A DNA stretch of 64,000 bases from Octopus sinensis (Eukaryota). Below the pieces are notes generated by a model. The model was not told the origin of the DNA and searched no databases. It saw only the letters and a program-made list of their open reading frames with translations. Below, piece after piece: positions 2,750-62,472 of this stretch. Made by a program: the position numbers and the translations under genes. Position 1 is the first letter of the stretch; every line of letters starts with the position of its first letter. The DNA is taken from the NCBI RefSeq assembly GCF_006345805.1, contig NC_043010.1, forward strand, positions 62,310,001-62,374,000, given 5' to 3'.

Positions 2750-3089
2750 TTAAAACACACACACTCACACCTCACACACCTATACACCCTAGCACTTTTC
2801 CAACTCCCTCCTCTAAAATGTGAATAGTTTTTCTGGTTCCTCTGCTGCAAGAATCCTGTGTATAATCCAGTGTAAGAAACCACTTCTGTATTTGATAGCC
2901 ATTTTTGCACTTATATATTAAATATACACATCTTTACATGTATATATATATCTATAGTATTTATTTTTGTTTTCTTTTCACTGTTTCAGAGTGTACTGTG
3001 TGACCTGTTTTGTTGAGAAGACAATCAGTCGGTCCGAGCCACATTCGTTAAGACTCTACTAGTTCTTGTTTCATGCTTTCATTATCATC

Positions 3090-5429
3090 ATGGAGAGGTC
3101 TGCCGGGATTCCAATCTATGGTGAAATGTATGGCATGCCATTCCATCACAGACTTCCCACACCAAGAATGCCAACCCTTAGCGACTTTTCTGGCAAGCAT
3201 TTCGGCCAGGAACATGCTCTTGATACTCAAAGGATGGCTCCGTTAGGGGGCAAACAATTTCCTATTCATAGCTCACAGAGTTCTCACTCACAGCAAAGGA
3301 TGACGCCGATTGCTGAGAAATCCAGCCATCACCATAGCAACAGTTCTGGGAAGCACATTCACCATCGACATAGTTCTTCTCATTCACACAGCTCTCAAAG
3401 AATGTTAGAACCCGGTGAGAAATCTATCCACAATAGCAGCAGTGACTCTGGGAAGCAGTACTCCCATGACACACACAGGATCTCTCATGTGGCTGAGAAG
3501 TCTTCCCATAGCTCCGGCAAGCATATGTCTCATGGAAGTTGTCAGGAGACTCCAAGGATGTCACATGTTCCAGAGAAAAACATTCACAACAGCATCTCCA
3601 GTAAACAGATCTCTTCCCACAGACATAACTTGGAGAAGGAGAGAATAGCCTCACCAGTTGACAAACCAGACAATAACAGCAACAGCGACCTGTCTGGGAG
3701 CCAGTTCTCTCATGAGTCGACTATAGAGAGCCAGAGACTGCCCTATATTGGTCAGACAGTGTTTCCTGGTAACAATATGTACAGCAGCCAGTATTCTCAA
3801 CCATGTTACCTACCAACTACTGACAGAATGCAGTCAAGCTTGGAGGGCGGACAATCATCTAAGGAGAGTTCTTCTCAAAAGAGCTCCACTTCTAGTATTG
3901 ATAAATCATTCCATGGTGATGTGTCTCAAAAACAATATGGCCCGAACAAATTGTCGCCAAGCCAACCCAAACCACAAGTATTGAGGCAGCTCTTCTGCGA
4001 TTACTGTGGCAAGAAGTTTGCTCAGGAATATTTGATGCACATGCACCGAAGGAAACACACAGGAGAGAAACCGTTCCAATGCGATATCTGCAACAAACAG
4101 TTCTCTCGCAAAGATGTTATGAAAAGACATAAGAAAAACCATATGGAGGGTCTTGTCCAATCCCCCAAAGTTCTTGGAAACAGCTACCAAGTTCCTATGC
4201 AAGAGAATTCTCAAATGGCGAAAAAGCAGTTTACACCAGATAAACTATTTCAATGCGATGTATGCATGAAGTATTTCGGTACGAGGAATTATCTTGAAAT
4301 TCATAAGAGGACTCATACTGGGGAGAAACCATTCCAATGTGATTTCTGTATCCAAAAATTTGCTCGAAGAGACACGCTTCAGATCCATCGACGCACCCAT
4401 ACTGGAGAGATGCCATTCCAGTGTGAAGTCTGTCAGGAGAGATTTTCACAGCGAATAAAGCTTCAGATTCATCAGAAAACACACATTTTGAAGAAACGGC
4501 ACCAATGCGAATTTTGTCTGAAGCATTTTGCACAAAGGTATTACCTACAGATCCATCGACGACTGCACACCGGTGAAAAACTGATGCACTGTGACATTTG
4601 TTTGAAGAAGTTCACTCAAAAACATTACTTAATCATTCACCGAAGAACCCACACGGGAGAGAAACCATTCCAGTGTGACTTTTGCATCCAGAAATTTGCT
4701 CGCAAAACGACCCTTCAAATTCACCGGAGGACTCACACGGGGGAAAAACCGTTCCATTGTGAGATTTGTGACAAGAGGTTCGCCCAGAGCGATAAGTTGC
4801 GAGTTCACCGTCGCACTCATGCACCGAAGCGTCAGTATCAATGCGATATTTGCTTAAAGATGTTTGCGCAGAGACATTATCTTCATGTCCATCAGAGGTC
4901 TCACACGGGAGAGAAACCGTTCCAATGTGAAGTTTGTTTTAAACAGTTTGCTCAGAGAAACACATTACAGATACACAAGCGAACCCACACAGGAGAAAAA
5001 CCATTCCAGTGTGACGTCTGCCTCAAGAACTTTGCCCACAAACACTATCTAAGATTACATAAACGGACCCACACTGGGGAAAAGCCATTTCAATGTGACT
5101 TCTGCCTGAAGCAGTTTGCACAGAAAAACTCTTTGAAGATCCATTGTCGAACCCACACTGGTGAGAAACCGTACCAGTGTGAGATATGCTTCAAGTCTTT
5201 TGCTCAAAGACAATACCTGCGATTGCACAAGATTACACACAGCGGAGAGAAAGCCTACCATTGTGATATGTGCCCGAAACAGTTCACACGAGGGGATACC
5301 CTGCAGAGACACAAGAAGACTCACAACGGACCCCAACCGAGCAGTAAACCTCACAAAGTGTCTGTTAATTCCAACAATAAAACAATTGAAGAGTTTCCAC
5401 CAATGAGCACATACCTGTGGCAGCTGTAG
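3090..5429 (+). CDS. C2H2 zinc-finger protein (ZNF-A): 15 fingers (2+13) and a Ser/His-rich N-terminus
   Basis: Uninterrupted ORF (track 3066-5429; first ATG at 3090). 15 C-x2-C-x12-H-x3-H motifs, mostly with TGEKPF linkers. Polypyrimidine acceptor TTTTCACTGTTTCAG ends at 2989. Confidence 0.93.
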   Translation: MERSAGIPIYGEMYGMPFHHRLPTPRMPTLSDFSGKHFGQEHALDTQRMAPLGGKQFPIHSSQSSHSQQRMTPIAEKSSHHHSNSSGKHIHHRHSSSHSHSSQRMLEPGEKSIHNSSSDSGKQYSHDTHRISHVAEKSSHSSGKHMSHGSCQETPRMSHVPEKNIHNSISSKQISSHRHNLEKERIASPVDKPDNNSNSDLSGSQFSHESTIESQRLPYIGQTVFPGNNMYSSQYSQPCYLPTTDRMQSSLEGGQSSKESSSQKSSTSSIDKSFHGDVSQKQYGPNKLSPSQPKPQVLRQLFCDYCGKKFAQEYLMHMHRRKHTGEKPFQCDICNKQFSRKDVMKRHKKNHMEGLVQSPKVLGNSYQVPMQENSQMAKKQFTPDKLFQCDVCMKYFGTRNYLEIHKRTHTGEKPFQCDFCIQKFARRDTLQIHRRTHTGEMPFQCEVCQERFSQRIKLQIHQKTHILKKRHQCEFCLKHFAQRYYLQIHRRLHTGEKLMHCDICLKKFTQKHYLIIHRRTHTGEKPFQCDFCIQKFARKTTLQIHRRTHTGEKPFHCEICDKRFAQSDKLRVHRRTHAPKRQYQCDICLKMFAQRHYLHVHQRSHTGEKPFQCEVCFKQFAQRNTLQIHKRTHTGEKPFQCDVCLKNFAHKHYLRLHKRTHTGEKPFQCDFCLKQFAQKNSLKIHCRTHTGEKPYQCEICFKSFAQRQYLRLHKITHSGEKAYHCDMCPKQFTRGDTLQRHKKTHNGPQPSSKPHKVSVNSNNKTIEEFPPMSTYLWQL

Positions 5430-14164: not shown

Positions 14165-14383
14165 CCCTTTAGTGTTCAGATTATTGAATCAAACATAATG
14201 CTTATTGATTCTCATTGATTTGAATTAATCATGCATTATCTCATATCTTCAAGATCTTGATGGTGTAATTACTTAATGTAGAATAACATTGTAGGGTAGA
14301 TGTGAGGGCCTGGATCTGGTCAGTTTGAACATAAAACAGATTAACTATTTTGGCCGGATATGGCCGGTTTAAATACAAAAGGG
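14165..14383. mobile_element. piggyBac-type MITE (second family)
   Basis: TTAA|CCCTTT...AAAGGG|TTAA; internal sequence homologous (reverse orientation) to the host element at 63094-63668. Confidence 0.8.
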
Positions 14384-14729
14384 TTAAAGTGATGCTCCAG
14401 CATGGCTGCAGTCTAGTAGCTGAAACATGTACAGGATTAAAGATGTGCAGAACTTTTTTTTTCGTTCAATTTCCTCTGTGTGAACCATCAAATCTGGTTG
14501 TTTCCTCCATTTTCTCCTTCCGTTCTGGAACCTTCCATGTCTGTACAATCCAATCATATACATGCTACCCCTTCAGCCTCAGACAGGCCATGGCATGGTT
14601 TACCTGGAGAAATTAGACATTACTCTGCACACAAATTTTCTCGTGCATCTGATAAGGCTGAATGCATTTCTCACCCATTTCTTTTTGTCAGTTTGGTAGA
14701 TGAACCCTTTTGTCACTGTATTTCTGTGT

Positions 14730-15093
14730 GGAGGCGCAATGGCCCAGTGGTTAGGGCAGCGGACTCACGGTCCTAGGATTGCAGTTCGATTCCCACACAG
14801 GGTATTGTGAGTGTTATTGAGCGAAAATACCTAAAGCTCCACAAGGCTCCGGCAAGAGGTGGTGGCGAACCCTGCTGTATTCTTTCACCACAACTTTCTT
14901 CCTGTTTCCGTTGTACCTGTATTTCAAAGGGGCTAGCCTTGTCACACTCTGTGTCATGCTGAATCTCCCCAAGAACTACGTTAAGGGTGCATGTGTCTGT
15001 GGAGTACTCAACCACGTGCACGTTAATTTCATGAGCAGGCTGTTTCGTTGATCGGATCAACTGGAACCCTCGTCATCGTAACCGACGGAGTGC
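14730..15093 (+). mobile_element. tRNA-derived SINE, family R (GGAGGCGCAATGGCCCAGTGGTTAGG head)
   Basis: A-box/B-box-like head (TGGCCCAGTGG, GTTCGATTCC); ~370-bp body shared with 19622-19999 and 44025-44401. Confidence 0.85.
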
Positions 15094-15865
15094 CAAGAAG
15101 ACTGTATATCTGTTGAGATGCTCTGTTTTTCTCTCAATTATTTAAAATATAACAGAGAAATTAGTAAAATAATTTAGTTATCATTAAGCTAGCGATAGGA
15201 CCATTAATTGTGACTAAGGTTTGGTGAAAGATTTTAATGCAAAACTTTTGAACACAAAACATGTACTACAGAACCAGAGCTGGTTTCAGGCAGATTGGTA
15301 TCAAAAGGGTTAACACAAATACGCAAGCACAAACACACAGATATTGTAAACTTAAGGTTACACATTTACAAGATATAATCCAGGCAGTTCTGATACCATC
15401 TTATTATGTCATCATCATCATCACCATTTGATGTCTGTTTTTCCATGCTGGTATGAGCTGCAGGGTTTGACAGGAGCTGGCAAGGCCAGGAGAGCTACAC
15501 TAAGCTCCATTTGTTTTGCTATGGTTTCTGTGGCTGGATGCCCTTCCTAATGCCAACCACTTTACAAAGTGGACTGGCTGCTAGTGTGCATGTGATCATT
15601 TCATGTCCACTTATCCATGTTTGCATGGATCAGACGTAATTCAGTGAAGCGAATTTGCTGCAGCTGGATGCCCATCCTGTCACCAACCCACACCTGTTTC
15701 CAAGCAAGGTAATATTTCTCTGTGGCCAGACATATTTCATGAATGACTGGGAACAAGCAACATCACTCGTATGATGGTGATGTTCATTTATAACTGTCAC
15801 ACAATATCAAGATAAGCATACATACATAAATATATGTATATCTATAGTATAACCTATATCAAGAA

Positions 15866-16500
15866 GGCAGCAAGCTGGCAGAAACGTTAGCATACTGGGC
15901 AAAATGCTTACTCTTTTACTTGTTTCAGTCATTTGACTGGAGCACTGCCTTTAGTTGACAAATCAACCCCAGGACTTATTCTTTGTAAGCCTAGTACTTA
16001 TTCTATCGTTTTTTTTGCTGAACTGTTAAGTTACGGGGACGTAAACACACCACCATCAGTTGTCAAGCGATGTTGGGGAGACAAACACAGACACACACAC
16101 ACACATGTATATATACACATATATACGATGGGCTTCTTTCAGTTTCCGTCTACCAAATCCACTCACAAGGCTTTGGTCGGCCTGAGGCTATAGTAGAAAA
16201 CACTTGCCCAAGGTGCCACTCAGTGGGATTGAACCCGGAACCATGTGGTTGGTAAGCAAGCTACTTGCCACACAGCCACTCCTGCACCTATCACAGCCAT
16301 ACAGCCACTCCTGCACCTATACCGCTTAGCAGTATTTCATCTGTCTTTATGTTCTGAGTTCAAATTTCGCCAAGGTCGACTTTGACTTTCATCCTTTCAG
16401 GGAGGTCAATAAATTAAGTACCAGTTGCATACTGGGGTCAATCTAATCGACTGGCCCCCCTCCCCCAAAATTTCAGGCCTTGTGCCTAGAGTAGAAAAGA
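15866..16500 (+). mobile_element. Family-M SINE (tail A) split by an antisense full-length family-C SINE (15911-16323)
   Basis: Host head ends AAAATGCTTA (15910) and resumes GCTTAGCAGTATTT (16324); GCTTA is duplicated. TATAACCTATAT at 15848-15859 and 16502-16513 flanks the host. Confidence 0.8.
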
Positions 16501-16513
16501 ATATAACCTATAT

Positions 16514-16662
16514 TAGTGGTTCCCAACCTTTTCATTAGCAAGGACCCTTTTTATTTAGATGGGTTTTCCCATGGACCCCTTTTAATATACTTATCCTTAT
16601 ATATATATATGAAATTTTAAATTTAGTTCATGGACCCCCGGTACTAACTTTGTGGACCACTG
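16514..16662. mobile_element. hAT-type MITE
   Basis: Ends TAGTGGTTCCCAAC / GGACCACTG; 8-bp flanks ACCTATAT / TTCTATAT (6 of 8 match). Confidence 0.55.
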
Positions 16663-18450
16663 TTCTATATCATCAAAAGCTCTGGTGTTGGCTCCACATA
16701 GAAAGCACCCAGTCCACTCTATAAAGTGGTTGGCATTAGTAAGGGAATCCAGCTGTAGAAACTATGCTCCAGAACAGACAGTAGAACCTGCTGCAGCCCC
16801 TGGCCTTACCGGCTCCTGTCAAACTGTCCAACCCATGCCAGTATGGAAAATGGGTGTTAAGTGACAATGATGAAAATGATGATCCTGTGTCTACACGTAG
16901 ATAATGAGCATATACGAGGGGCTTCTTGGCTTGTTATAGTTTCCATCTACCAAATTCACTCACAAGGCTTTGGTCAGCCCAAGGCTATAGTAGAAGAATT
17001 TTACTCAGGTGCAGCACAGTGAGACTGAACTCAAGACCACATGGTTAGGATGCAAGTTTCTTAACCACACGTGTGTATGATGGGCTCCCACAGTTTCTGT
17101 CTACCAAATGGCCTGACAAGGTTTTGGCCAGTGCAGACCCATAGTGGAAGACACTTGCAGGAAGTTTCATGCCGTGGCGTTGAACCCAGCGCCATGTGGC
17201 TACAAAGGCAGTTTCTTAAGCACACAGCCACACCTGTGCCTGTGGTCGAGGAGGGCACTTTGCAACAGTGTGGTTCCAGGTTCAAGCCCAATGCACTGCT
17301 TGTTGGACAAATATCTTCTCCGACTCAGTGGCTGGAATTTGATGGATAGAAACTGTGCAAAGCCACATTGGAATGTGAGAATGAGTGTGTGTATACATGT
17401 GTGTGTGTGTAACTCTGTGAATGTATATGTGTGTTTGTAGCTGTGCTTATTAAAAGTAGTGCATTGAGTTGTGTCCCTTTATACCAAACCGGTACAACTT
17501 AGTGAATTGATAAACAGAGACTGATAAATTGGAACAGGACTGGAATATACATCAGGATCAATGTGATTGATTAAAATTCCTTCATAGGATGCTTCAGCAT
17601 GGTCACAGATTGAAGCCCAGGTAAAATATACTTTCTCTACATCTAAGTCTTCATCATCACCATCTTTGTCTTCCATCCACGTTCCATGCTGATTGGTTCA
17701 TCACAATTTGAACCTGTTGTCATCCAGAGTTACTACCCTCCTACACATCTCAAATGATAGCAACTTATTTGCACCTTCCACTTTCGGCTTGATTTCTATG
17801 GCTCGGTCCTCTTCCAAAAACTGACCACTTTTCACAGAGTGGTGTGTGCATTTCCCTGTGGCACCAGAATTCAAAAGATTGTCTGCGGTAAAGGCACATA
17901 GCCCAGTGGTTAGGGCCACTCATCATTGCTAGATCTAGGATTCAATTCCCAGACTGTTGGACAAATATCTTCTCCAACACAGTGGCTGGAATTGGAATTT
18001 AATATGTTGCCCCAGTCCACTCGGCTGTAGATGGGTCACACTGCAATAGACTAGTCTTCTGATCAGGAGGAGGGATGTTGGCCTGCTCGCCTTGCCTGTG
18101 GAGTGGCATCATTTGAAAGCTAAAACAATGCAAAGTGCATTGTGACCAGTGATGTATAACAACATCTGATAGCTGATACCCTGATATACATGTGTATATT
18201 TGTGATTCCTCGTCTTGTCATCATGAGGTAGTTGTGAGTGAGTGTCCACTGTCATATGAGCAGTGTTTATTTCCGGTGAAAACACTTGTAAATGTGGAGA
18301 AATATCATGTTGCTTTGGAAACAGGTGAGGTTTCCAAATGATGGTGACGAGAAGGAAATCCAGTCATAGAAAATCTGCCTCCATGAATTTCTATCTGAGC
18401 CTTGCAATCTTGGTAAACTAGCCATTAAAACGATGATGTAGAAATATATG

Positions 18451-20280: not shown

Positions 20281-20649
20281 CTATAGCTTGCACTGGGCAC
20301 ACCAAATGGAAGACCTGCCTTCACCCTTCCTACATATTGAGTAGGGCCATTTACCTGAAGTGGGTAGAATCCTGCTTACTAGATCTTTGGGCTTTGCTAT
20401 GTTAACTTTAAGGCCTTTTGATTCCAGGTTTTGCTTCCACACCCAGAATTTATTATCTAATACTGTTACAGATTCTACCATGAGAGCTAAATCATCAGCA
20501 TATGATAGTTCCCTGGGGCAGCTGGTCTTAAATTCTTCTGTTATGGCCTGGAGGACTATGATGAATAGGAGAGGATTGAGAACTGAGCCCTGGTGAATGC
20601 CTACCTGTACTCTAAATTCATTACTGAACTCACAGTTAACTGTCCTCAT
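20281..20649 (-). pseudogene. RTE-type reverse transcriptase fragment
   Basis: ORF contains VGIHQGSVLNPLLFIIVL and YADDL, the RT core motifs. Confidence 0.85.
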
Positions 20650-20959
20650 GGAGCTTTAGGTGTTTTCGCTCAATAAACACACACAACACCTGGTCTGGGA
20701 ATCGAAATCACAATCCTCTGACCGCGAGTCCACTGCCCTAACTACTGGGCGGAATTTGAACTCAGAACGTAATGGCAGACGAAATACTGCTAAGCATTTT
20801 GCCTGGCATGCTAACGATTCTGCCAGCTCGCCGCCTGTCAAACCATCAAACTGCTGTCGGCATAGAAAAAAATGATATTAAGTGATGATGTACATATGTG
20901 TATGCATGTGTGTATGTGTGTGTGTATCTAACTCTTCTGTCTAACCACCTCTGTCCAGC

Positions 20960-22097: not shown

Positions 22098-23299
22098 GAG
22101 AGAGGGATAGATAGATAGGTAGATAGATAGGTAGAGACAGATAGATAGGTAGAGACAGATAGATAGATAGATAGATGTATATTAGTGGTGCGTGATCCGT
22201 GGTGAGAATATACCTATATGTATATTATATATATCTTTTTGTTTCATGTTTTCACTTGTTTCAGTCTTTGAACTGTGGCCATGCTGGGGCACAGCCTTGG
22301 AGAATTTTAGTCGAATAAATCGACCCCAGCACATATTTCTTTAAAGACTGGTACTTGTTTTATCGATCTTTCCTGTCGAACCGCTAGCAGACGGGGACGT
22401 AAACAAAACGACACCGGTTATCACACGCATCATAATCATCATCGTCATTTAACGTCCACGTTCCATGCTGGCATGGGTAGGACGCTTTGACAAGAGCTGA
22501 ATTATGTCCCAGTATCTGCTTTGGCACGCTAGACATTAATTATAGACATTTACATACACATATATAAACTGTTATATACATATATGTGTGTATATATGTA
22601 CGTATTTATATATATATATATATGTATACGTATATATATATTGGATATGGTATTACATATAATATTATCTATCCATCAGTTTATATATATACATATACGA
22701 GCGCATATTTCTACAGGCGAATGGTGTAATCGCGATCAGTTAATTCGCAGCCGTGCATTTATTTTCAAAATTCCGTTCCCACATTTTTCTAACGACTTCT
22801 AAAGCCTCCTCCCCTTCCTCCCTCCTTCTACGCCTCTAAAGAAGGGCAGGAGTAACGGTACTATGACAGAGAGAGAGGGGGAAACTGACAGAGTATCAGA
22901 TGAGAGTATGAGGAGTAGGAGGGAAGGGGAGGAAGAGTGGAGGAGTGAGTCTGGAACACTTCTTTGTCTCTCCTAAGCCTTTCACTCGAGACAATGAAAA
23001 GCGGTGAATAGTTCCTTGCAAAAAGAAATCCGTCCCATTTAAAGTTAATGCGAGGAATTGATATTTTTGAATAAAGTAAAAATTATATAATATAAGTTAG
23101 CTTCTAATATTGTTTTACTGTGTTTCATGTTATATCCACTTTGCACGGCGGTTTGACTAAATCTCTGGTTTAAAATATCCAAATTTGATAAATAATACTG
23201 ATAAACTATTAACTAGGTCACTCTGATTCGGACATATTGAAGAATGTTCCTCCGTAAAAAAACTTCTGGGGTTGGTATTTGTCATGTTTTTGCACTCAG

Positions 23300-28273: not shown

Positions 28274-29849
28274 ATGTATTCGGTCCAGTCCAATGATAAC
28301 TGCTTTGAGAATTGTGGAGGTGGGGGCCATAATCACTCTCAGTCTTTTTCACCACCGAATGGCCACCACCACCACCATCATCACCACCACCATCACCATC
28401 ACAACAACAACAATGGCTCGTTCATGTTTAAACCGAAAGGTAACGAAGCCCGGGACAAGCCATTCAAATGTGATATCTGTCGTAAAGGTTTCACACTAAA
28501 AGCCTACCTCCAGCGGCACCAGATGGCCCCAGAAGCTGGCAAGCATTTCAATTGTAACTTCTGCAGCAAAGTGTTTCCGCAGCGAGACAGGTTAGAGAAA
28601 CACGAGAGGACCCACACAGGTGAAAAGCCGTTCACCTGTGACATTTGCTCCAAGTCCTTCTCACAGAAGTCTCACCTGAACACACACAAAATGGTTCACC
28701 AGGGAATTAAACCAGCCAACCGTGTGAAACACAAGAACCTCCACAACCATTCTACCAACATGGCAATGATGGTTCCTCGAAAGCAGTTTCATAACCACTC
28801 CCACAATCATGGTCACACCCATAGTCACAACCACAGTCATAATCATGGCCACACCCACTCTCACAACCACGGCCACGCCCACAACCACGCCCATAACCAT
28901 GGCCACACCCACAATCACAACCACAGTCACGGCCATTTTCACGGAAGCAATGTGTCGTTCCAGAACAGCGGACACTTTAACTCCAAAGCATTCCCGATTA
29001 ACAGAGGAAATGAAGCTCGAGATAAGCCCTTTAAATGTGATGTATGTCGCAAGGGTTTTACTTTGAAGGCCTACCTACTCAGGCACCAACTTGCCCCTGA
29101 AACTGGCAAACACTTCCCTTGTCCGTTTTGCAGCAAAGTCTTCCCACAGAGGGACCGTCTTGAGAACCACCAAAGAACCCACACCGGGGAGAAACCGTTC
29201 ACGTGTAACCTTTGTGGGAAAAGTTTTGCGCAAAAATCCCACCTGAATACCCACAAGCACACACACAGTGGCGAGAAGCCACACCAGTGTCCCATTTGCA
29301 ATAAGTCTTTTGCCCAGAAGGACCATTTAAACAAGCACAGACGGACTCACACTGGCGAGAAACCTTTCCAGTGTACGATTTGTCTGAAAACCTTCTCCCA
29401 GAAGACCCACCTGAAGCAGCACAGTCGCATTCACGTCGGGGAAGAATTCTCTCAGTCCATGGGCCATAACCATCATCATCATCATGTCCATAATCATAGT
29501 CAGCACCAAAACCATCACACCAACAGCAGCCCTTCGGACACTCAAATGACCGCTGATGGCCATGGAAGCAAGCAGCAAACGCCAGCCCTGGTGTCCAGTG
29601 GTGGTGGTGCTGGTGGTACTACGACCCACCACCAGATGGCAGCCAGCTCTAGTTCAGCATCGACCTCATCTGGGACAGCATCAACCCATCATACATCGTC
29701 AATGAGGAAACAGCAGCCACAGCACTCGGCTACGTCACCGTCTCCCACTGTCGTTACCCCGGGGACCCTAGCTTCCAATTCTTGCTCTCATCAGATGACG
29801 CAGTCTTCATCATCGCAGCATGCAGCTCCACCACCGCCACCTCCAAGGA

Positions 29850-29882
<33 letters not shown>

Positions 29883-30325
29883 CTCCACCACCACCACCAC
29901 AGCAACAGCAGCAGCAACAACAACAACAACAGGCTCAGCATCACCATCATCATCAACAGCAGTCCACGCCATCGTCTTCCCCATCTTCATCGTGTCAAAT
30001 GATGTCACAACATCAAGCAGGACTCCGCAAATCGTCATCGTCGTCGTCATCAATGTCCCCCGCAGCCTGTTCTCACCAGATGATGTCCCAACATGCTTCC
30101 ATTCGGCAGCAACCAGCCACCGTAGCGTCAGCATCAATGAACTCCACATCTCCCCATCAACTTCCACAGAGACCTGACAACAACTACTGGAAGCGCAGCT
30201 TCCCCGTTACCACAGCATGGAATTCTGGTTGGTCCAACCAACCGGCTACCACGACATACGGCGTCGGACAAAGAAAGTGCGAGAGCCAAGAGGCTGTCCG
30301 CTACATCCAGACTCTTTTACAATAA
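28274..30325 (+). CDS. C2H2 zinc-finger protein (ZNF-B): 8 fingers (2 lacking the last His), His-rich and Gln/Ser-rich regions
   Basis: 683-aa ORF; six canonical fingers plus two C-x2-C-x12-H fingers; acceptor AGs end at 28245 and 28251, just upstream of the ATG. Confidence 0.92.
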
Positions 30326-37602: not shown

Positions 37603-38545
37603 ATGGGTACAGACTGTGTGACACATGTGTGCAAACAACCATGCTACATGGCAGTGAAACCTGGTCCGTGACTGCTGAGGACATGCGTAATCTTGCGAGT
37701 AATGAAGCCAGTATGCTCTGCTGGGTGTGTAATGTCAGTGTGCATACATGAGAGAGTGTAAGCGCCCTGAGAGAAAGGTTGGACTTAAGAAGCATCAGAT
37801 GTGGTGTGCAAGAGAGACAACTGTGCTGGTATGGTCATGTGTTGCATATGGATGAGGACAGCTGTGTGAAAAAGTGTCACACCCAAGGAATTGAGGGAAC
37901 CTGTGGAAGAGGTAGACCCAGGAAGTTCTGGAATGAGGTGTTGAAACATGATCTTAGAACATTGGGCCTCACTGAGGCAATGACAAAGACCTTTGGAGAT
38001 ATGCTGTGCATGAGAATACCCAACAAGCCAAGTGAGATAATAACCGTGGCCTATGCCAATGCAGCATAACCATCACATGTAATAGTGTCCTTCAATCATT
38101 GGGCAATAAACTGCGCTTGCGAAGACCTGTTGAGGCAAGTGAAATCATTGTCATGGCCGATAACAATACTGCCCAATTAGCACCTGTGCCAGTGGCACAT
38201 TAAAAGCACCATTCAAGCGTGATCGTTTCCAGGGCCGCCTGATTGGCACCCATGCTGGTGGCACATAAAAAGCACCATTTGAACATGATCGTTGCCAGCA
38301 TCGCCTGCTGGTGGAAAGTGAAAAGCACCATTCAAGCGTGGTCCATGCCAGTACCACCTGACTGGCTCCTGCGCTGGTGGCATGTAAAAGCATCCACTAC
38401 ACTCTCAGAGTGGTTGGCATCCAACTGTAGAAACACTGCCAGATCAGATTGGAGCCTGTTTCAGGCTTCTGGCTTGCCAGCCCTCAGTCAAACCATCCAA
38501 CCTATGCCAGCATAGAAAACGGATGTTAAACGACAATGATAATAA
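37603..38545 (+). mobile_element. 5'-truncated RTE LINE: ORF2 C-terminus, 3'UTR with ~60-bp tandem repeats, (GAT)n-like tail
   Basis: MLHGSETW-like codons near 37640; ORF RQLCWYGHVLHMDEDSCVKK...GRGRPRKFW, a typical RTE end; then 4-5 AAAAGCACC-containing repeats and the tail shared with many short copies. Confidence 0.85.
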
Positions 38546-38899: not shown

Positions 38900-39825
38900 A
38901 GGTTCATCTGGTATCACAAATAAAAATTTTTCCAGATACTCATTGAAGATCTCCGCATTTACACATCACAAATTCTTGAGGCTGTTTGGCAGAATGTCGA
39001 ACAGTTGGGGACCCTTGTAACCTAAGCTGTTACAATACTGGCTCCATATTCTAGATGGAGAAGTCGGGATCTTTGGTTCTATGCAGTACCATTCAGTCTG
39101 ATGATTGGAATAGCTTTAAATTCCAAAGTTGGGAGCCAGATCTTCCAGGGTCTTCCATACCACTGCATATCTTCCACACCTTCTCCTTGGAAGTAGAGCA
39201 TCAATTCCTTTAGCCTGTCCGAGAAGCTCATATGTTTCTCTGAATCAGTCTTTGTGTAGTGGTTGCTTCAAGTTCCGCCGACATGAGTGGGGAGACATAA
39301 ATCAGACAACTGAGAATGAAAGTTCTCCCTAAGGGTAGTGTAGTACCTTTTTTTCTGATTCTGAATGATCTCGGAATCCATCCAGCTCTTCACCTGTACA
39401 ATACTGCCATCTCAATAATGTGCTCATGGAATGTTGCATGCTTTCTCATGTGGATTCTCTGGTCACACCACCTCTGACTCAGTGAATGCTCTACCCTCTA
39501 GCCCTCTGTATTCTGATTCTAGTCTGTTTGTGAGCCAACAGTGGAGGGCTTGAACATTCTCAGCATTCAACTGCATGTTATTTTTCATCAGCCCTTTTGC
39601 AGGGTGTTTGGCAGTGTCAGTCATCAGGGTCAATAATAATTTTGTGTCATCAATATGGCTGGTGAGAGTGGCTGAGGGAACCACCACAAACAGTAGGGGT
39701 CCCAATACAGTTCCTTGAGGGATTCCACTGAGAATTGATCTTCCCAAAGAGAACAACATCGGCTGCAATTGTCTGACTCTTGCCTTATAGGAAGTCGTAC
39801 CACCACTTCCCTGACTGGCTTCCAT
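38900..39825 (-). pseudogene. CR1-like LINE RT remnant
   Basis: SGIPQGTVLGPLLFVV and IDDTKL (degenerate YADD) in the minus ORF at 39463-39825; several frameshifts. Confidence 0.75.
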
Positions 39826-41786
39826 GCTGGTGGCAGGTAAAAAGCACTATCCGAATATGATCAATGCTAGGCCTGCCTGACTGGCTCCTGTGCTGGTGGC
39901 ATGTAAAAAGCACCCACTACACTCTCTGAGTGGTTGGCATTAGGAAGGGCATCCAGCTGTAGAAACACTGCCAGATCAGATTGGATCCTGGTACAGCCAC
40001 TGGCTTTCCAGACCGCAGTCAAACCGTCCAACCCATGCCAGCATAGAAAACAGACGTTAAACAATGATGATGATGACAATGATATATGTATACATATGTA
40101 TGTGTATATATGTATATATATATATATATATATATCTATATATATATATATCTATATATATATATATATATATACACTATGTAAATGGCAATTTCTGTCT
40201 GTTTGTGGCTGTGTATGTTTGTGAATTTTGTTACTATAACTCCACCGATACTATCCAACTGATCTTGATAAAACTTGACATGTGTGGGGCTTATGTGCTC
40301 ACAAACTTGGAATTTTTTAAAAAATCAATAATTTTTAATCAGCATCGATTTTTTTTCAAAAATCAATAGGACATTCAAAATGCAAATTCTCATAGGATTG
40401 TTATTTTCTTCCATAACTTTTAAAGTCTTCGACTAATTTTCTTGAAATTTTATACACAGGTGGAATATGCACTAAGGACGGGTTGAGACGAATATATTTT
40501 TACCTAGGTCACTCAAGCAAAGTGTAAGATGATTTTTGATTAACTGATTAACAAAATTTCACCTAAATTGTTGTGGGGTTAAAATATTCATTAACTCTTT
40601 TAACATTCTGAGGTTGCTGTAACAGGTATTTTCTTAACACCTTCACTTAAAATTGTTGGGTCTAACCGTTGCAATCAATATTTGATTTTCACGATCAGTG
40701 GAACTATACCCAGGAAACACAGACATCAACTTAAGTGCTGTGCACTTAGAATTTTCTCTCAGGTTGCAAGAGAATTTGCTTTTTTTCCCTCTTCATAGCA
40801 TCTTACGACTCTATGACCGCCACATTGTCGCCTCTGCTCTCCAAATGTTTCTGTAAGTATAAAATCTCTTTTCACTAAATAATTTTTTGTTTACTTTTCA
40901 AACTTTTATGTTCTTTTTTTTCATAGCACTCCTTTACAATTCCCTTCGTTATGTTTCCATCGATTATATATTTCCACTCATCTGACCAAACGATTGTCAT
41001 TTTCTAATTCCACACATATTTATTTGTATTATTGTTTTGTGAATGAATTTGCTTACGCCTTCTATTATCTGTCCTATGTCTTGATTTACACTTTCCGTCT
41101 GAGAGAAATTAGGCATTGTAATGGGTACTGGGAATATCCCTGCTCCTGGGCATTACTGGGTACCTCAGCTAGTATATGTGTGTGTGTGTGTGTGGCATTA
41201 TGCCATGCTTCAGAAAAAGACCCGTCTAGCCAACTAAAATCTCTGTCATGGCAGTTACTGGTGTGACACAAATGGCACGTAAAAGCACCCATTACGCTCA
41301 TGGTGTGGTTGGCGTTAGAAACCACGCCAAATCAAACTGGAGTATGGTGCAGCTTTCCAGCTTACCAGCCCTGATCAAACCGTCTTTCCCATACCAGCAT
41401 GGACAACGGATGTTGATAATGATGATGATGATGATAATGTTATATACATGCACACACACACCCACACACAAAACTGGTTTAGGCATTTTAAGGAAGGCAA
41501 CACCAGCCTTAAAAATAAACCAAATTTAGGGTGACATTCTGTTGTTGAAGAGGAGGCTTTGCTTAAACAACAGCCAAACACCACCAGCACCTAACATTAT
41601 CGGCAGAAGTTGATCTTTGACAAAACACCATCAGCCAACCCTTCCATAAGCTCAGTCTTGTAAACAGACTCTGTCAGGAAGTTCTTCAGACGCTGACCAA
41701 TGACCAGGCTCAGCAATGTGTGGACATTTGCAAACAACCACCGGCAAATCCTTGAAATATTTGTTTTTGGAGTTGAACTGTAACTC

Positions 41787-42115
41787 ATCATCATCATCAT
41801 CATCATTTAACATCCGCTTTCCATGCTGGCATGGGTTGGACAGTTTGACTGAAGGCTGGCGAACCAGATGGCTGCACTAGGCTCCAGTCTGATATGGTAA
41901 TGTTTCTACAGCTGGATGCCCTTCCTAATGCCAACCACTCTGAGAGTTTAGCAGATGCTTTTTACATGCCACCAGCATGGGAGCCAGTCAGGCTGCACTG
42001 GCAATGATCACGTTTGATTGGTGCTTTTTACATGCCACTCGCATGGGTGCCAATCAGTGGGTACTGTCATTGGCCACAACAATGACTTCACTTGCCTCGA
42101 CAGGTCTTCGCAGAT
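41787..42115 (-). mobile_element. RTE-LINE 3'UTR fragment
   Basis: (CAT)n followed by the reverse complement of the RTE tail and internal repeats. Other copies at about 15412-15590, 16670-16880, 39830-40075, 41270-41435 and 54475-54650. Confidence 0.75.
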
Positions 42116-49903: not shown

Positions 49904-51143
49904 TCATCCTTTCGGCGGAGGGGCCTTGTTCTGCTCCTGCGCCGCTACCGCCGCCACCGCCGCCGGCCCCCTGTTGTGAGTGCGTTCATGGACCTTCAGA
50001 TTAGTCTGGTGAGCAAAACCTTTGTTACAGACCGTGCACGTGAACGTCTTGGCAGCTTCACCGGTGTGTAGCCTCTCGTGGCACTTCAGGTTGGTCTGAT
50101 GGCTGAACGCATTCTCGCAGTACGCGCACTGGTAAGGTTTTTCACCCGTATGAGTCCTCTCATGATCTCGCAGGTTCGTTTGGTGACTGAACGCTTTCGT
50201 GCAGAAGCGACACTGGTACGGTCGCACGCCCGTATGGGTTCGTTCGTGATCTCGCAGGTTAGTCTGATGGCTGAACGCATTCTGACAGTAGGAACAACTG
50301 TAAGGCTTCTCGCCCGTGTGGGTCCTCTGGTGGTCCTTTAGGTTCGTCTGGTGACTGAATGCTTTATCACAGTATGTACACTGAAAGGGCTTCACGCCGG
50401 TGTGGGTCCTCTCGTGGTCTTTGAGATTCGTCTGATGGCTGAAGGCCTTGTCGCAATAGCTGCATCGATAGGGCTTGATACCAGTATGGATCCGCTGATG
50501 GTCCTTCAGGTTTGTCTGATGAGAAAACGCTTTACCACAGTATCCACAGTGGTACGGCTTGCAGCCCGTGTGCGTGCGCTCGTGGCTCTTCAGGTTGGTT
50601 TGGTGCGAGAAAGCCTTACTACATACGATGCACTTGAAAGGTTTTTCGCCAGTGTGTAAACGGAGATGTGACTTCAGGTTGGTCTGGTGCGCAAACATTT
50701 TCTCGCAGTAGACACACCGGAACGGCTTCTCGCCGGTGTGTGTGCGTAAATGGTCCTTGAGTCGAGCACGGATGGGGAATGCTTTACGGCAAAACGAACA
50801 ATAGAAGTGCTTGCCATCGTCGTTCAGCGTAGCAGCATGCTGGTGATTCAACAGGTCCGATCGTCGAGTGAAAGTCTTGCGGCAAACATCACACTTGTGT
50901 TGCTTCTCCTCTTTCTCACTACTCGTTGGGTGTCGTTTGATCATCATCATGTTCATGGCCGCATGCATGGTATGCATGGTATGGATGGCATTCATGTTCA
51001 TACCGACCATGCTGGCGTTCACTATCATGCCTGATGGCATACTCATATTCATTGTAGTGGCTGAAGAACTTGTCGAAGGCGGCTGTGAGTGTGGTGCTTG
51101 TGGTTGCTGCTGCTGTTGCTGTTGTTGTTGTTGCTGCTGTTGT

Positions 51144-51196
<53 letters not shown>

Positions 51197-51871
51197 CTGC
51201 TGCTGCTGTTGTTGCTGCTGCTGCTGTTGTTGTTGTTGCTGTTGTTGGGGAGGGGCTATGTTTACATTGCCTGCGATGCTCGTGGCTGGTGGCATGTTCG
51301 CAGCGGTGTTGGGACTCGGTCCCAGGTTCACGTTGAGGCCCGGGTTGACGTTTGTGTTCATGTTGGTGTTGTTCAAACCGACACCGAGGCCCTTACCACC
51401 GGTGCCACCGACACCACCTCCTGAATGAAGGGCATTCTGGTTAACCCCTCCGATATGCCCGTGGTGATGGTGGTGGTGATGATGATGATGTTGGTGGTTG
51501 CCAGTGCCCCCGGCACCGGCACCGCCCCCACTGCCACTGCAGTTGGTGTGTCGGGCGTGGCTGTGGGCGTGATGGTCATGGTGTCCACTGTGGGCGTGGC
51601 TGTGGGCATGACTGTGAGCATGGTGTGTGTGCCCAGCAGAAGGGTGTGGCCCCTTCAGTAAGTTGTCCCTGTAGAACACGTCGTTGCCTCGCATGTGTTC
51701 CATGCTGGTTGTCTGTCGACCGACATTAGTGCCACCGCTGCTGTTGGTGACACGGTTCCCTGCGCCACCCCTACCACCACTGCTGCTTGTATCTTGCCCT
51801 GCATTGGGATTATTTCCAGGCGGAACTAAACCAGTCCCGGAAGATGAATACATAGGTTGTAATGACTCCAT
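49904..51871 (-). CDS. C2H2 zinc-finger protein (ZNF-C): 11 fingers, polyQ48, His/Gly-rich N-terminus
   Basis: 655-aa ORF; one atypical and ten canonical fingers; acceptor TTCTACAG one base before the ATG (AG at 51874-51873). Confidence 0.93.
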
Positions 51872-53373
51872 TCTGTAGAATTTGGTGAGGTGAGGGGAAA
51901 CAGTTTAGTTGATTGTTGTTGTTATTATTATTATTATTAATAATACCACTACTGTTGTGGTTATTTCTGTTGCTGCTGTTAAAAGAACTTTGTTTCTGGA
52001 ATATTCACAATTTTAACATGGTTAGATTAATGCTGAAGACATTTCGATATTTCCTGTGGAAAGACTTGCTTAAGGACTTGCTGTGCTCTCTGCCTCTCTC
52101 TCTCTCTCTCTCTCTCTTGCTTAAAACATATTTCAACTGAGAGATTTTTTTTCTTTTTTTATCTTTCAATACTCATCTTTGTCCCTCCCTCCAACACACA
52201 CACACACACACACACATATATTTATATATACACACACAGAAATATATGTATATATAGTTGTGTGTGTGTTATATGTATATTCACTTTAGTCTTTATCTTT
52301 TTTCACTGGTTTAATGCCTTCTGTTTTCCTTTCCACCAACCCACCTCTCTCTCCTCTCTATCTCTCTCTCTCTACTTTCTGTCTGTCTATCTTCTATCCC
52401 TCCCTCTCTTTCTTACTTTACTCTCTTACCCAATGTTATCAGATTACAAGAAAGTCTTCTCCCTTCGAAGTCCAGAAGTCTCTCTTAACAAACATGATAG
52501 TCATTCACCATGTACTGAGCATTCTAATTGTTAAACGATCATTGCAGTTAATTAACACATCTGCTCCACCTTAGACATTTACAGTGAATTTCCAGTGAGA
52601 AAACTGCCAAAGTTTATTGTCGTTGTTGTATGGTGGTGGTTGTGGTGGAGCTGTTGAAATATTGGTCAGAGAGAAAGCAGGGAGATATTAAACGGTCAAG
52701 AAGCCTGCCTTGTATTGACGAACTGTTCCATCCTGTTTAAGTAATGTTGCCGTTAGGGAGGGACAAAATGTACAAAACAAAATAGGGATAGTAAAAATAA
52801 TGATCCACAATGTGATGAGGTTTGAAAGAAGTCAGGAAAAAGAGGATACTGTCCATTCAGAAGGTTAGACAACGGGGAAGAGGAGCAGAAGAAGGAATCT
52901 TTGGTGTTTTCATTTTGGTGTCGGTATTATTATGTCTCTGTGGAACCGGAAGGAAAATGATGAGGCGACTGGAAATTTTGAAAGAGTTTTTCTTCTTGCT
53001 TTCTGTTGGAAATGGGAAGAGTGAGAGAGGGAGTGAATGAGAAAGAGAGGGAGGGAGAGAGAGAGAGGAGGAGAGAGGGGGAAGGTGGTGGAATCCTTCA
53101 TTTACTGGGTACAAATCTGGATCGGCTGAAAAGAAATAGAGAAAAAGAAAACAAAATTAAAAGATGCTAATATAAAGTATGTTATGTGAGAGAGAGAATG
53201 GTATACATGCAATAATTATAATAATCAAAACTTTAATTAAATTTTTTGCTGATTATACAAAATGATGGAACACTAATTCTCAAGAGAAAAATATTCAACT
53301 TAAAATAAAAATAAAACAATTCTTTTACCTGTTCCAGTTATTTGACTGCAGCCATGCAGGAGCACCACCTTAA

Positions 53374-54034: not shown

Positions 54035-55061
54035 TTAAGGGGTTTTAGTCAAAGAACTCGACCCCAGGATTTATTCCTTGTAAGCCTGGTACTTATTCTG
54101 TCAGTGTCTTTTGCCAAACTGCTAAGTTATGGGGCCATGAACACATCAACATCGATTGTCAAGCGATGATGGGGAGACAAACACAGACACACACATATAT
54201 ATGTATGTACATACGACAGGCTTCTTTCAGTTTCTGCCTACCAAATCCACTCATAAGTCTTTGGTCAGCCTGAGGCTACAGTAGAAGACACTTGCCCGAG
54301 GTGCCACTCAGTGGGACTGAACTCAGAACCTTGTGGTTGGTAAGCAAGCTTCTTACCACACAGCCATGCCTGTACCAATATTCAAAATATTTAAAAAAAA
54401 GAAACCCTGAAAAATTATTCTGTGTTGATTTTTATACAATGGAAGTTCACACACAGTGTGTGTGTGTGTGTATCATCATCATCACTGAATGTCCGTTTTC
54501 CATGCTGGCATGGGTTGGACGGTTTGACAAGAGCTGCCTGGGCTCCATGTCTGTTTTGGCCTGGTTTCTATAGCCAGATGATCTCCCTAACAAGCAAACA
54601 GTTTACAGAGTGTACATTTTATGTGGCACCAACATTGGTACATCTTATGTGGCCTTAGCACTATTTGACCGTCAGAGTTGGAAGGGAGTCAGATAAATGG
54701 CAGCTGCTTATGTTGTGAGTTCAAATGGATCGGTGGATTAACAGAATCAGTAGAGTGCTGGACAAAAGGCTTTGTAGTCAAATTTACCCTTCGTCCCTCC
54801 AGGGCCAATAAAACAAAGTACCAGTGAGATGCCAGGGATGTTAGTAACAATTACATATTTTACTTGCTGGGTCTGAGGAAAGGGACAATACTTAGGACCC
54901 TTGCAGGCCCTTCAAGACTGGTGAGCATGATGCTGTTAAGCATCTGTTAAACTGCTGCAGACCTTCACTGACCATCTAAGACCAATGGGTTTAACGCCAT
55001 TAAGGTTCTGTTACATGTGAACAACTGCAGGAAAGGATAAGAGCAAGAAGATTCCAGAAGG

Positions 55062-56450: not shown

Positions 56451-57091
56451 CAGTGGTTCCCAAACTTTTTGGGGCTGCCACCCCCTTGACACCCAGACCA
56501 CATTCCTCGTGTCCCACCCCCAACTAACCACACACAAACACTTTCTGAAGCAAATTCAAAGCAGTTATATTTCACAAATAAATCATCATCATTGTTCGAC
56601 TGTGGTCGAGACAATGGAATTTACCATGCTACGCCAGACTTCACGGTCCATCATGGCATTACGGAGGTCCCGTTGCTGGATGCCTGTATCCCTGGAGATT
56701 ATATCAGGGTAGGAGAGTGTGCGCCCTCTGGTATTGCGAGTAGATGGCTTCCAGAGGAGAAGAGTAGAAATTACCTCTTTTTCAGCTCTACAACAATGTC
56801 CAGCAAACTGGACTCTTCTACCTTTCACAAGAGATGACACAGGTGGTAGTTTCCCATATATTTGCATTTTGGTTGGATGGCGCTTCCACGAGAGATTTTG
56901 AGCTCTCATAAGGAGGCGAGTGTAGGAAGCTAACAAATCCATTATTTTGTTGTTTTTACATGAATCGCTACCCCATTAGCACCCCACTTTTTATATGAAT
57001 CACTACCCTATTATTGCCTCACTTTTCAATGGCCCCTTGGAAACTTCCACCACTCCCAGGGGATTGATACTGCCCACTTTGAGAACCACGG
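56451..57091. mobile_element. hAT-type MITE interrupted by a LINE 3' end
   Basis: CAGTGGTTCCCAAA / TTTGAGAACCACGG termini; 8-bp flanks GTATAAAT / GTATACAT (7 of 8 match). Confidence 0.7.
56580..56945 (-). mobile_element. 5'-truncated RTE-like LINE 3' end: open ORF terminus plus (GAT)n tail
   Basis: ORF RRVQFAGHCCRA...AMMDREVWRSMV (RTE-type R-x-x-x-x-GH and DRxxWR motifs), with the stop followed directly by (TGA)n. Confidence 0.75.
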
Positions 57092-59609: not shown

Positions 59610-60450
59610 ATGGCTTCAAATTTTGGAGCAAGGGGAAGGGGACCAGTTGATTACATTGACCCCAGTATGCAACTGGTACTTAATTTATCAACCCCAAAAG
59701 GATGAAAGGCAAAGTCGACCTCGACAGAATTTGAACACAGAACATAAAGATGAATGAAATACTGTTGAACATTTTGCCCAGTGTGCTAACGATTCTGCCA
59801 GCTTGCCACCATAATAGTAATAACAACAACAACAACAATAATAATAAATGATGGTTTCAAAATTTGGCACATGGCCAGCAATTTTTGGGGAAAGAGTAAG
59901 TCAGTTACATCGACCCCAGTGTTCAACTGTTAGTTATTTTATCGACCCCTGAAAGGATGAAGAGCAAAGACAACCTCAACAGCATTTAGAACATATCATA
60001 ACAACAACAATAATAATAATAATAATAATTCTTTCTACTATAGGCACAAGGCCTGAAATTTGTGGGGAGGGAGTTACTTGATTACATTGACCCCCAGGGT
60101 TTCACTGGTACTTAATTTATCAATCTTGAAAGTATGGAAGGCAAAGTTGACCTCAGCAGAATTTGAACTCAGATGAACTCGGATGGATGAAAATACCGCT
60201 AAGCATTCTGCCTGCCAGATTGTTGCAATAATAATAATAATCCTTTGTACTAAAGGCACAAGGCCTGACAATTTGGGAATGGGACTAGTTGATTTCATCG
60301 GCCCATGTTTCACTGGTATTTAATTTATGGACCCCGAAAGGATGAAAGGCAAAGTCGGCTTCAACAGAATTTGAACTCAGAACGTAAAGACAGATGAAAT
60401 AGTGCTAAGCATTTTGAACAACATGCTAATTATTCTGCTAGCTCACCACC

Positions 60451-60485
<35 letters not shown>

Positions 60486-60695
60486 CCTTTCTACTGTAGG
60501 CACAAGGCCGGAAATTTTGTGGGGAGGGATAAGTTGATTACATTGATCCCAGTACGTAACTGGTACTTAATTGAGCCTGAAAGGATGAAAGAAAAAGCTG
60601 ACTGCATGAAATTTGAACTCAGAATGTCAAAACATGTGAAATACCACAAGGCATTTTGCTCAGTAAGCTAAAGATTTTGCCAGCTCACTACCTTC

Positions 60696-60742
<47 letters not shown>

Positions 60743-61300
60743 TGATGAGGATTTCAAATTTTGGCACAAGGCCAGCAGTTCTGGGAAGTAAGTCAATTGG
60801 ATCAACCCCTAGTGTTAAACTGGTACTTATTTTATTGACCCTAAAACAGAATGAAAGGAAAAGTCAATCTCGGCAGAATTTGAACTCAAAACGTAGCAAC
60901 AGATGAAATACTAAGCATTTTGCCTGGTGTGCTAACGACTCTGCCAGCTCACTGCCTTAATAATGATGATAATAATAACAAAATAATAATAATAATAATA
61001 ATAATAATGATAATCCTTTCTACTATAGGCACAAGGCCTGAAAATTTTGGGGAGGGGGCCGGTCGATTAGATTGACCCAGTATGCAACTGGTACTTAATT
61101 TATCAACCCCAAAAGGATGAAAGGCAAAGTTGACCTTGGCGGAATTCGAACTCAGAACGTAAAACAGACGAAATACCGCCAAGCATTTTGCCCGGTGTGC
61201 TAATTTTTCTGCCAGCTCGCCACCTGGTTAAAAATTTTAGCACACAGCCAGCAAGTTTGGATGAGGGAATAAGTTGATTATATCGACACCAGCACTCAAC
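59610..61300 (-). repeat. Head-to-tail array of about 8 family-M SINEs separated by (AAT)n
   Basis: Copies start at about 59610, 59850, 60030, 60240, 60483, 60750, 61013 and 61233, all on the minus strand, with tails A and B mixed. Confidence 0.85.
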
Positions 61301-62274: not shown

Positions 62275-62472
62275 TATACACATTTATATATATATATGTA
62301 AATACATCATCTGCATCCTCATTTAACGCCTGCTTCCCAGGCTGGCATGGGTTGGATGATTTGACAGTCAGAAGACTGTAACAAGCTCTATTGCCTGCTG
62401 TGGCATGGTTTCTACAGCTGGACGCTCTTACACACACACACACACACACAAATCACCAACAACATCATTTAA

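Follow-up and report, generated by a model that had tools for sequence, protein, structure and literature searches.

This work concerns ZNF-C, a C2H2 zinc-finger gene in a 64,000-nucleotide stretch of the Octopus sinensis genome (RefSeq assembly GCF_006345805.1, contig NC_043010.1, positions 62,310,001 to 62,374,000 of the forward strand), which we call the window and whose first letter is position 1 in the coordinates given below. The predicted protein carries nine consecutive fingers with one and the same recognition helix, HQTNL. We describe the gene, the divergence of its fingers and its relatives, and then consider whether the array is tuned to a trinucleotide-repeat tract.

Structure of the ZNF-C gene and protein

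The coding sequence occupies positions 49904..51871 of the minus strand (655 codons followed by a TGA stop at 49904-49906, according to the listing of open reading frames (ORFs)), and an identical gene call is found on GCA_006345805.1 CM016872.1:62349904-62351871. Directly 5' of the ATG, the sequence reads as a pyrimidine-rich tract ending in ...ttctacag (51872..51895, minus strand), which is likely a 3' splice acceptor and would imply an upstream non-coding exon. The ORF is intact, and because this acceptor-like tract immediately precedes the start codon, the whole protein appears to be encoded in one uninterrupted coding exon. The 2-kb bin containing the ORF has a guanine-plus-cytosine (GC) content of 0.52, as against 0.38 and 0.36 in the adjacent bins. 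An (AAY)9 tract, composed of five AAT, three AAC and a final AAT, sits just 5' of the putative acceptor, 41-67 nt upstream of the start codon (51912-51938, minus strand).

All of the following segments lie on the minus strand. The protein begins with the motif MESLQ (51857..51871), which an alignment shows to be shared with two homologues described below, P0271 (MESLQ) and P0272 (MDTLQ). The N-terminal 345 residues consist mostly of Q, G, H, S and N. They include a His-rich low-complexity region (residues 81-138, 51458..51631) in which (CAY)10 encodes a run of ten His (H10, residues 128-137, 51461-51490), an uninterrupted poly-Gln of 48 residues in mixed CAG and CAA codons (residues 209-256, 51104..51247), and a Met/Asn-rich low-complexity segment (residues 272-310, 50942..51058). 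Eleven fingers, numbered F1 to F11, follow in order. F1, placed by alignment, is degenerate, C-x2-C-x12-H-Q-H (residues 325-345, 50837..50899), and is succeeded by a 10-residue spacer whose end is an invariant K-H-F. F2 (residues 356-378, 50738..50806) has the helix IRARLKD with a Pro before it, matching the family motif FP-x-R-x-RL. F3 and F4 (residues 384-434, 50570..50722) have the helix HQTNLKS. In F5-F9 (residues 440-574, 50150..50554) the helix is HQTNL[KR]D, the specificity residues H, T, N and D are identical, and the linkers conform to TG[EIV][KR]P. F10 (residues 580-602, 50066..50134) has HQTNLKC and is followed by a longer, non-canonical linker, TGEAAKT; F11 (residues 610-632, 49976..50044) has HQTNLKV. 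An Ala/Pro-rich tail ends the protein (residues 633-655, 49907..49975).

A Pfam scan of all 655 residues returned finger models and weak low-complexity noise only, with no KRAB, SCAN, BTB, ZAD, SET or other effector domain. The scan bears out the independence from KRAB that had been proposed in a preliminary description of this DNA, and on the same grounds we rejected a KRAB-type repressor identity for ZNF-C. In character, the low-complexity half of the protein resembles regions involved in activation or in multivalent assembly rather than a silencer. The exact ZNF-C protein is absent from the clustered protein collection. An AlphaFold2 model calculated without an alignment was unusable (predicted local distance difference test score 48.8, spurious strands) and was not used.

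Nine fingers with one helix

A regular expression applied to the translation identified ten canonical C-x2-C-x12-H-x3-H fingers (F2-F11), all of which have F at core position 10 and L at helix position +4. Between F2 and F10 the eight successive linkers are TGEKP, TGEKP, TGCKP, TGIKP, TGVKP, TGEKP, TGVRP and TGEKP. The Pfam models zf-C2H2 and zf-H2C2_2 match the protein with 162.5 bits (cut-off 25.2) and 203.3 bits (cut-off 40), respectively. Judged by zinc-ligand spacing and TGEKP-like linkers, the array is classed as Krüppel-type C2H2. Within it, helix positions -1, 1, 2, 3 and 4 are H, Q, T, N and L in nine of nine fingers from F3 to F11 (49976-50722, minus strand), and position 6 reads S, S, D, D, D, D, D, C and V. 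The preliminary description had reported the same nine helices and the same position-6 series at 49975-50725, in agreement with the ORF translation.

To evaluate how unusual this arrangement is, we compared it with 480 other multi-finger proteins containing 6,682 fingers. HQTNL occurs twice among these fingers, both times in the two homologues of ZNF-C, and the pairing of H(-1) with N(3) is found in 1.6% of them. Runs of consecutive fingers with identical five-residue helices reach six in one protein, four in two and three in nine. The uniformity of the ZNF-C helices thus exceeds chance. A search of the literature for 'HQTNL' found nothing relevant.

Tandem duplication is the appropriate null hypothesis for uniform helices, so we compared the 84-nt finger units pairwise, leaving synonymous differences uncorrected. 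On average, two fingers are 63% identical in DNA. Synonymous differences reach a proportion of 0.78 in the helix codons and of 0.89 overall, so that silent sites are saturated. By contrast, the proportion of non-synonymous differences is zero in HQTNL and zero in the zinc ligands, as compared with 0.50 in the hairpins, where each variable column holds 4-8 different residues, and 0.32 in the linkers. In the nine helices His is encoded by CAC or CAT, Gln by CAG or CAA, Thr by ACC, ACA, ACG or ACT, Asn by AAC or AAT, and Leu by CTG, CTC or CTA. Codon inspection therefore upholds both the synonymous codon variation and the wide hairpin differences that had been pointed out earlier. TRF detects periodicities of 84 and 168 bp in ZNF-C, with matches of only 71-74%.

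Since silent sites are saturated while HQTNL has accumulated no replacement, against 0.50 in the hairpins, the helix has been held by purifying selection long after the fingers were duplicated, as the preliminary description had argued. Recent tandem duplication or gene conversion was rejected as the source of the uniformity on the basis of the 63% DNA identity and the saturated silent sites: either process would have homogenised the silent sites too.

Homologues and the ZNF-C family

Orthologue searches with finger-rich sequences mostly returned generic poly-finger proteins, with 7,747 and 7,786 hits in two word-indexed protein searches and 197,313 hits in an exhaustive HMMER search. The sole query that found true relatives consisted of the N-terminus together with F1-F3. 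It identified P0271 (290 residues; ENA assembly ERZ21867824, contig of 228 kb) and P0272 (293 residues, from SRA run SRR27666071). Both have in common with ZNF-C the MESLQ/MDTLQ start, an F1 of the form C-x2-C-x12-H-Q-H-A, a spacer ending in K-H-F, and FPIRARLRDH in F2. After F2, they contain just three fingers, with the helices HPSNLRT, HHSNLKT and HQTNLKD.

Helix conservation among orthologues, a check proposed in the preliminary description, could be examined in these two distant homologues only: H(-1) and N(3) are kept in all three post-F2 fingers of both proteins, the last helix, HQTNLKD, is identical, and the first two read HPSNL and HHSNL. Tentatively, F3 and F4 of ZNF-C would occupy the array positions of the HPSNLRT and HHSNLKT fingers. 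Outside the helix, identity between the fingers of ZNF-C and P0271 is 0.18-0.59, computed over only 17 columns. F11 and the last finger of P0271 and P0272 share the pattern C-x-[VLI]-C-x-KGF-x-HQTNLK-x-HERTH.

A paralogue, ZNF-B (683 residues, 28274..30325, plus strand), lies 20 kb away from ZNF-C. It contains the F1-F2(-F3) module twice, with a His-rich (H-x)n tract between the copies, as well as runs of His and of Gln. The remaining four fingers uniformly carry Q(-1) and H(3), with the helices QKSHLNT (twice), QKDHLNK and QKTHLKQ; the recognition code applied to ZNF-C below suggests N-G-A triplets for them. In the F1 module, the columns H, Q, A, K, H and F are invariant among ZNF-C, both ZNF-B modules, P0271 and P0272. 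F1 lacks a normally spaced second His throughout, with H-Q-H in ZNF-C, P0271 and P0272 and H-Q-L or H-Q-M in ZNF-B, and an invariant K-H-F is located 8-14 residues past F1, just before F2.

On these sequence features, ZNF-C, ZNF-B, P0271 and P0272 are grouped as a small family defined by the F1-F2 module and a uniform helix array. The family signature is a degenerate F1, C-x2-C-x12-H-Q-x-A, a spacer ending in K-H-F, and an F2 containing FP-x-R-x-RL. After F2, positions -1 and +3 are uniformly H/N in the nine fingers of ZNF-C and in the three of each of P0271 and P0272, and uniformly Q/H in the four of ZNF-B. Because ZNF-B carries the same module together with a uniform array of its own, uniform arrays are a property of the family, of which ZNF-C is the most extended member. 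No further carrier of the F1-F2 signature was found among the 480 multi-finger proteins or among 80 generic zinc-finger loci from a JGI metagenome scan (F1-F3 alignment). The best explanation of these observations is that ZNF-C is a lineage-restricted octopus gene for a predicted C2H2 transcription factor.

The window contains a third gene of this type, ZNF-A, a 787-residue ORF with 15 fingers (3066-5429, plus strand), so that three zinc-finger genes are clustered within 64 kb. The helices of ZNF-A have a higher-order periodicity, in which the residues at position +3 are Y,T,K,Y / Y,T,K,Y / T,Y,S,Y,T, and at position +6 almost every finger has, unusually, a hydrophobic residue (I, V or L). The DNA identity of its fingers is 0.43-0.73, indicating that they are old copies too.

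Predicted binding site

Since a canonical finger covers about 3 bp and fingers with the same helix read the same triplet, the array is most likely tuned to a tract of 3-bp periodicity. Helix positions 6, 3 and -1 make contact with the triplet's 5', central and 3' base, respectively, and the pairing between Asn3 and adenine is well defined (PMC3668361), so that the middle A favoured in the preliminary description has an established basis. Among engineered fingers, TSGNLTE is assigned to CAT, HRTTLTN to AGT and HTGHLLE to CGC (PMC7317221 Table 1); in this set, an acidic residue at +6 goes with a 5' C, and His(-1) goes with a 3' T and a 3' C alike (PMC7317221). By analogy, HQTNLKD would read C-A-Y. 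The predicted site is then (CAY)5 for the five central fingers and N-A-Y for each of the outer four, which have Ser, Ser, Cys and Val at +6.

This prediction modifies the (NAT)n site that had been proposed earlier. The central A is retained, and the 3' T should be widened to T or C in view of His(-1). Repeats of the (CAT)n or (CAC)n type are favoured as the better fit, and (AAT)n is a weaker candidate because Asp6 suits a 5' A less well. Note that (CAT)n and (GAT)n, which had been given as alternatives, are the two strands of one microsatellite, and that (TGA)n belongs to the same duplex.

Trinucleotide tracts and retroelement tails in the window

In the window, (CAY)5 occurs 26 times (10 tracts), as compared with no occurrence in shuffled sequences. 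When the full predicted pattern, (NAY)2(CAY)5(NAY)2, is used, the 64 kb contain perfect matches solely in the runs of His codons of ZNF-B (28365-28408, plus strand) and ZNF-C (51461-51489, minus strand), again with none in the shuffles; this follows from CAY being the His codon. These matches may be fortuitous, or they may offer a means of auto- or cross-regulation.

Interspersed repeats in the window carry trinucleotide tails. A short interspersed nuclear element (SINE) of about 209 bp has 11 copies that reach its 3' end, and 4-5 of them bear (AAT)n tails. Four of the 11 are arranged head to tail at 60243-61225 (plus strand), the first three junctions being purely (AAT)n-type tracts, and a fifth copy in the same orientation lies about 440 bp upstream (59632-59803). 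The whole cluster (59632-61225) looks as if new copies had inserted, time after time, into the microsatellite at the tail of one already present. A second interspersed repeat, with the 3' end ...CCAGCATGGAAAACGGACGTTAAA, also has copies that reach the 3' end, ten in number, at 2200-2563, 15410-15561, 16695-16860, 22448-22487, 38306-38531, 39825-40062, 41273-41435, 41786-42052, 54488-54524 and 62322-62356; (TGA/ATG/GAT)n tails are present on 9-10 of the ten.

Fragments of long interspersed nuclear elements (LINEs) were detected by scanning ORF fragments. One of them encodes a LINE C terminus (…DREVWRSMVNSIVSTTVEQ*, 56592-56975, minus strand) and has (TGA)3, TGATGATGA, directly after the ORF end. 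The other is an RVT_1 fragment with a YADD motif (20284-20655, minus strand; Pfam E 1.6e-8). In an octopus RTE element a microsatellite is reported to begin at the ORF end, a feature said to be common among RTE elements (PMC9115989). Rfam and tRNA scans of the window gave no matches.

The locus of P0271 (L002) offers a second example, in that the 3' end of an RTE-like LINE at 15950-16702 terminates in (ATG)5. No SINE common to this locus and the octopus window was found, and a tblastn search of the window with the reverse transcriptase fragment from the locus gave no match. The same locus contains (TA)n arrays of 1.4-1.6 kb (14325-15959 and 16786-18164) and has a GC content of 26% overall.

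The statement in the preliminary description that trinucleotides with a central A form the tails of retroelements here is accordingly sound, with (AAT)n on the SINE and (TGA)n on the second repeat and the LINE end. The link is correct for the tracts in the window and circumstantial for the function of ZNF-C.

Interpretation of the array

The reading that we favour, to which we give even chances, is that the ZNF-C array recognises a DNA tract of 3-bp periodicity made of A-centred triplets with a CAY core. In the proposed mechanism, the nine fingers would present His(-1), Thr2 and Asn3, with Asp6 in the central five, each to one triplet. The ligand would have a (CAY)5 core with (NAY) triplets on either side, corresponding to (CAT)n.(ATG)n or (CAC)n-like repeats, with a pyrimidine at the 3' position of each triplet. 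Identical fingers would permit binding in any register, and for this reason affinity should rise with tract length. Tracts of this kind are found in this genome mainly as 3' tails of an abundant interspersed repeat and of RTE-like LINEs, and also as poly-His coding tracts. The anatomy of the gene, the selection on its helix, its family and the make-up of the local microsatellites are observed directly, while DNA binding by ZNF-C, the triplet, the number of engaged fingers and the downstream effect are what we infer from the sequence.

Several points weigh against this reading. His(-1) is a weak and ambiguous determinant, and the base assigned to Asp at +6 was chosen by analogy with Glu. Four of the nine fingers have another residue at position 6, and the site may therefore not be a perfect repeat. 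The tails in the window, those of the ...CCAGCATGGAAAACGGACGTTAAA repeat included, comprise 2-7 units and are shorter than 27 bp. Long arrays often engage a subset of their fingers or give irregular motifs (PMC10287918). Finally, no orthologue of ZNF-C in another cephalopod was retrieved by protein, HMMER or metagenome searches.

A possible but rather unlikely alternative is that the recognition unit is a short motif rather than a 27-bp microsatellite. Three to five adjacent fingers would contact a CAY-type motif of 9-15 bp, and the rest would add non-specific affinity, sliding or hopping, or bridging of two sites. The shortness of the retroelement tails in the window is consistent with this idea, as are the presence of just three H-x-[ST]-N-L fingers in P0271 and P0272, the seven-residue linker that separates F11, and the frequency of short or irregular motifs among long arrays (PMC10287918). 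However, zero amino-acid change in all nine helices at saturated silent divergence argues that the base-contacting face of each finger is constrained.

Alternatively, ZNF-C may be a dedicated sensor of retroelement tails, which recognises RTE LINEs and SINEs by their (AAT)n or (NAT)n tails for their control without KRAB. The tails themselves suggest this, namely (AAT)n on SINE copies, (TGA/CAT)n on the second repeat family and the LINE end, the microsatellite directly after the octopus RTE ORF (PMC9115989) and the (ATG)5 tail of the RTE-like LINE near P0271; in addition, octopus zinc-finger repertoires have been predicted to match transposable elements in general (PMC10547256). On the other hand, the protein has no silencing domain and its poly-Gln/His-rich N-terminus is more activator- or assembly-like, Asp6 is mismatched to a 5' A and makes (AAT)n, the commoner tail type, the poorer fit, CAY tracts are also found in coding poly-His runs, and the co-occurrence is based on two loci. 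A dedicated sensor is compatible with the data yet is not singled out by them, and we regard it as unlikely.

The helix might also be conserved for a ligand other than DNA, such as periodic RNA (CAU-repeat transcripts or retroelement RNA tails), a repetitive protein or another polymer. RNA binding is known for some multi-finger proteins, RTE RNAs bear the same repeat at their 3' end, and ZNF-C matches the Pfam model zf-C2H2_jaz, of the double-stranded RNA-binding type, with 74.1 bits. This match, however, overlaps the generic C2H2 matches, the TGEKP-type linkers and C-x2-C-x12-H-x3-H spacing are typical of DNA-binding arrays, and the nearest structures are all DNA complexes; we consider a non-DNA ligand quite improbable. 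Least credible of all is the absence of any special function, with the uniformity left behind when an unexpressed or decaying ORF underwent tandem duplication or gene conversion: although zinc-finger arrays do expand by tandem finger duplication, 84- and 168-bp periodicity is seen by TRF, and the identical annotated protein is missing from the protein collection, this explanation is contradicted by 63% finger identity, saturated silent sites and zero helix replacements, by an intact 1,968-nt ORF in a genome of roughly 38% GC, and by conservation of the same residues in the homologues.

Comparison with known zinc-finger systems

The best matches of ZNF-C in the PDB are ZFP568 (11 fingers, 5v3m/5wjq; E 4e-97) and the designed six-finger protein Aart (2i13; E 5e-86), with PRDM9 also among the top matches; the nearest solved structures are thus arrays that wrap DNA. 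ZNF-C resembles the Krüppel-type arrays of ZFP568 and Aart in its C-x2-C-x12-H-x3-H spacing and TGEKP-type linkers, and a long array can track the DNA groove. In known natural arrays of this type, however, successive helices differ and the sites are aperiodic, whereas the nine helices of ZNF-C are identical from -1 to +4. PRDM9 is similar in having very similar fingers made by tandem duplication, but there the DNA repeats are near-identical, the contact residues are diversified and a PR/SET domain is present, while ZNF-C has 63% DNA identity, frozen contacts and no PR/SET. We rejected a PRDM9-like minisatellite array because the pattern of DNA and contact residues is the reverse and there is no SET domain.

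Zscan4 and CLAMP use few, non-identical fingers on dinucleotide-type repeats. In function they are, along with the engineered arrays described next, the nearest known systems. Both are natural microsatellite-binding C2H2 proteins, acting on (CA)n (Zscan4, PMC7083622) and on GA repeats (CLAMP, PMC4945028), and their occupancy of simple repeats depends on repeat expansion. They differ from ZNF-C in that their binding has been demonstrated and that of ZNF-C is predicted, and sequence kinship is limited to the finger fold; moreover, in ZNF-C each finger would read one unit of a trinucleotide repeat. Another related case is that of engineered EWS-ZFA fusions, which turn GGAA repeats into enhancers (PMC9374162). 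These also combine a low-complexity N-terminal region with a finger array aimed at a microsatellite, as predicted for ZNF-C, although they are artificial, act on 4-bp repeats and contain another low-complexity domain.

ZNF-C shares with the lineage-specific C2H2 expansions of cephalopods (PMC12513265, PMC10547256) the octopus genome, the clustering of zinc-finger genes, the lack of KRAB and the repeat-rich surroundings. It differs in belonging to the small MESLQ/F1-F2 family, of which two further members were found in the searched databases. No mention of uniform-helix arrays or microsatellite targets was found in these two papers, and no natural array in which one frozen helix serves each trinucleotide unit was found described in the literature.

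Implications

Zinc-finger arrays are usually seen as readers of long aperiodic words, and their evolution is described as diversification of the contact residues. If recognition of a 3-bp-periodic tract is correct, ZNF-C would be a natural case of one finger per repeat unit, in which selection has frozen one helix in nine old fingers, and it would represent a means by which the host reads microsatellites or retroelement tails without the KRAB system. If instead the site is non-periodic, or if there is no binding, ZNF-C would be no more than an ordinary, if unusual, member of its large gene family.

We see a small chance that an extended form of this reading is also correct, in which ZNF-C is a natural sensor of the length of trinucleotide repeats. 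It would bind (CAT)n/(CAY)n in any register, with occupancy scaling with length, and would thereby give the host one handle on every retroelement copy with an RTE-type (TGA/CAT)n tail. Such a handle would be independent of the internal sequence of the element. The poly-Gln/His-rich half would nucleate multivalent assembly, like the EWS-finger fusions at GGAA repeats, and ZNF-C would also recognise the poly-His-encoding (CAY)n DNA of its own gene and of ZNF-B.

Whether the expanded C2H2 genes of cephalopods are linked to repeats is an open question (Holzinger et al., PMC12513265). For this question, ZNF-C may serve as a concrete candidate with a simple predicted ligand.

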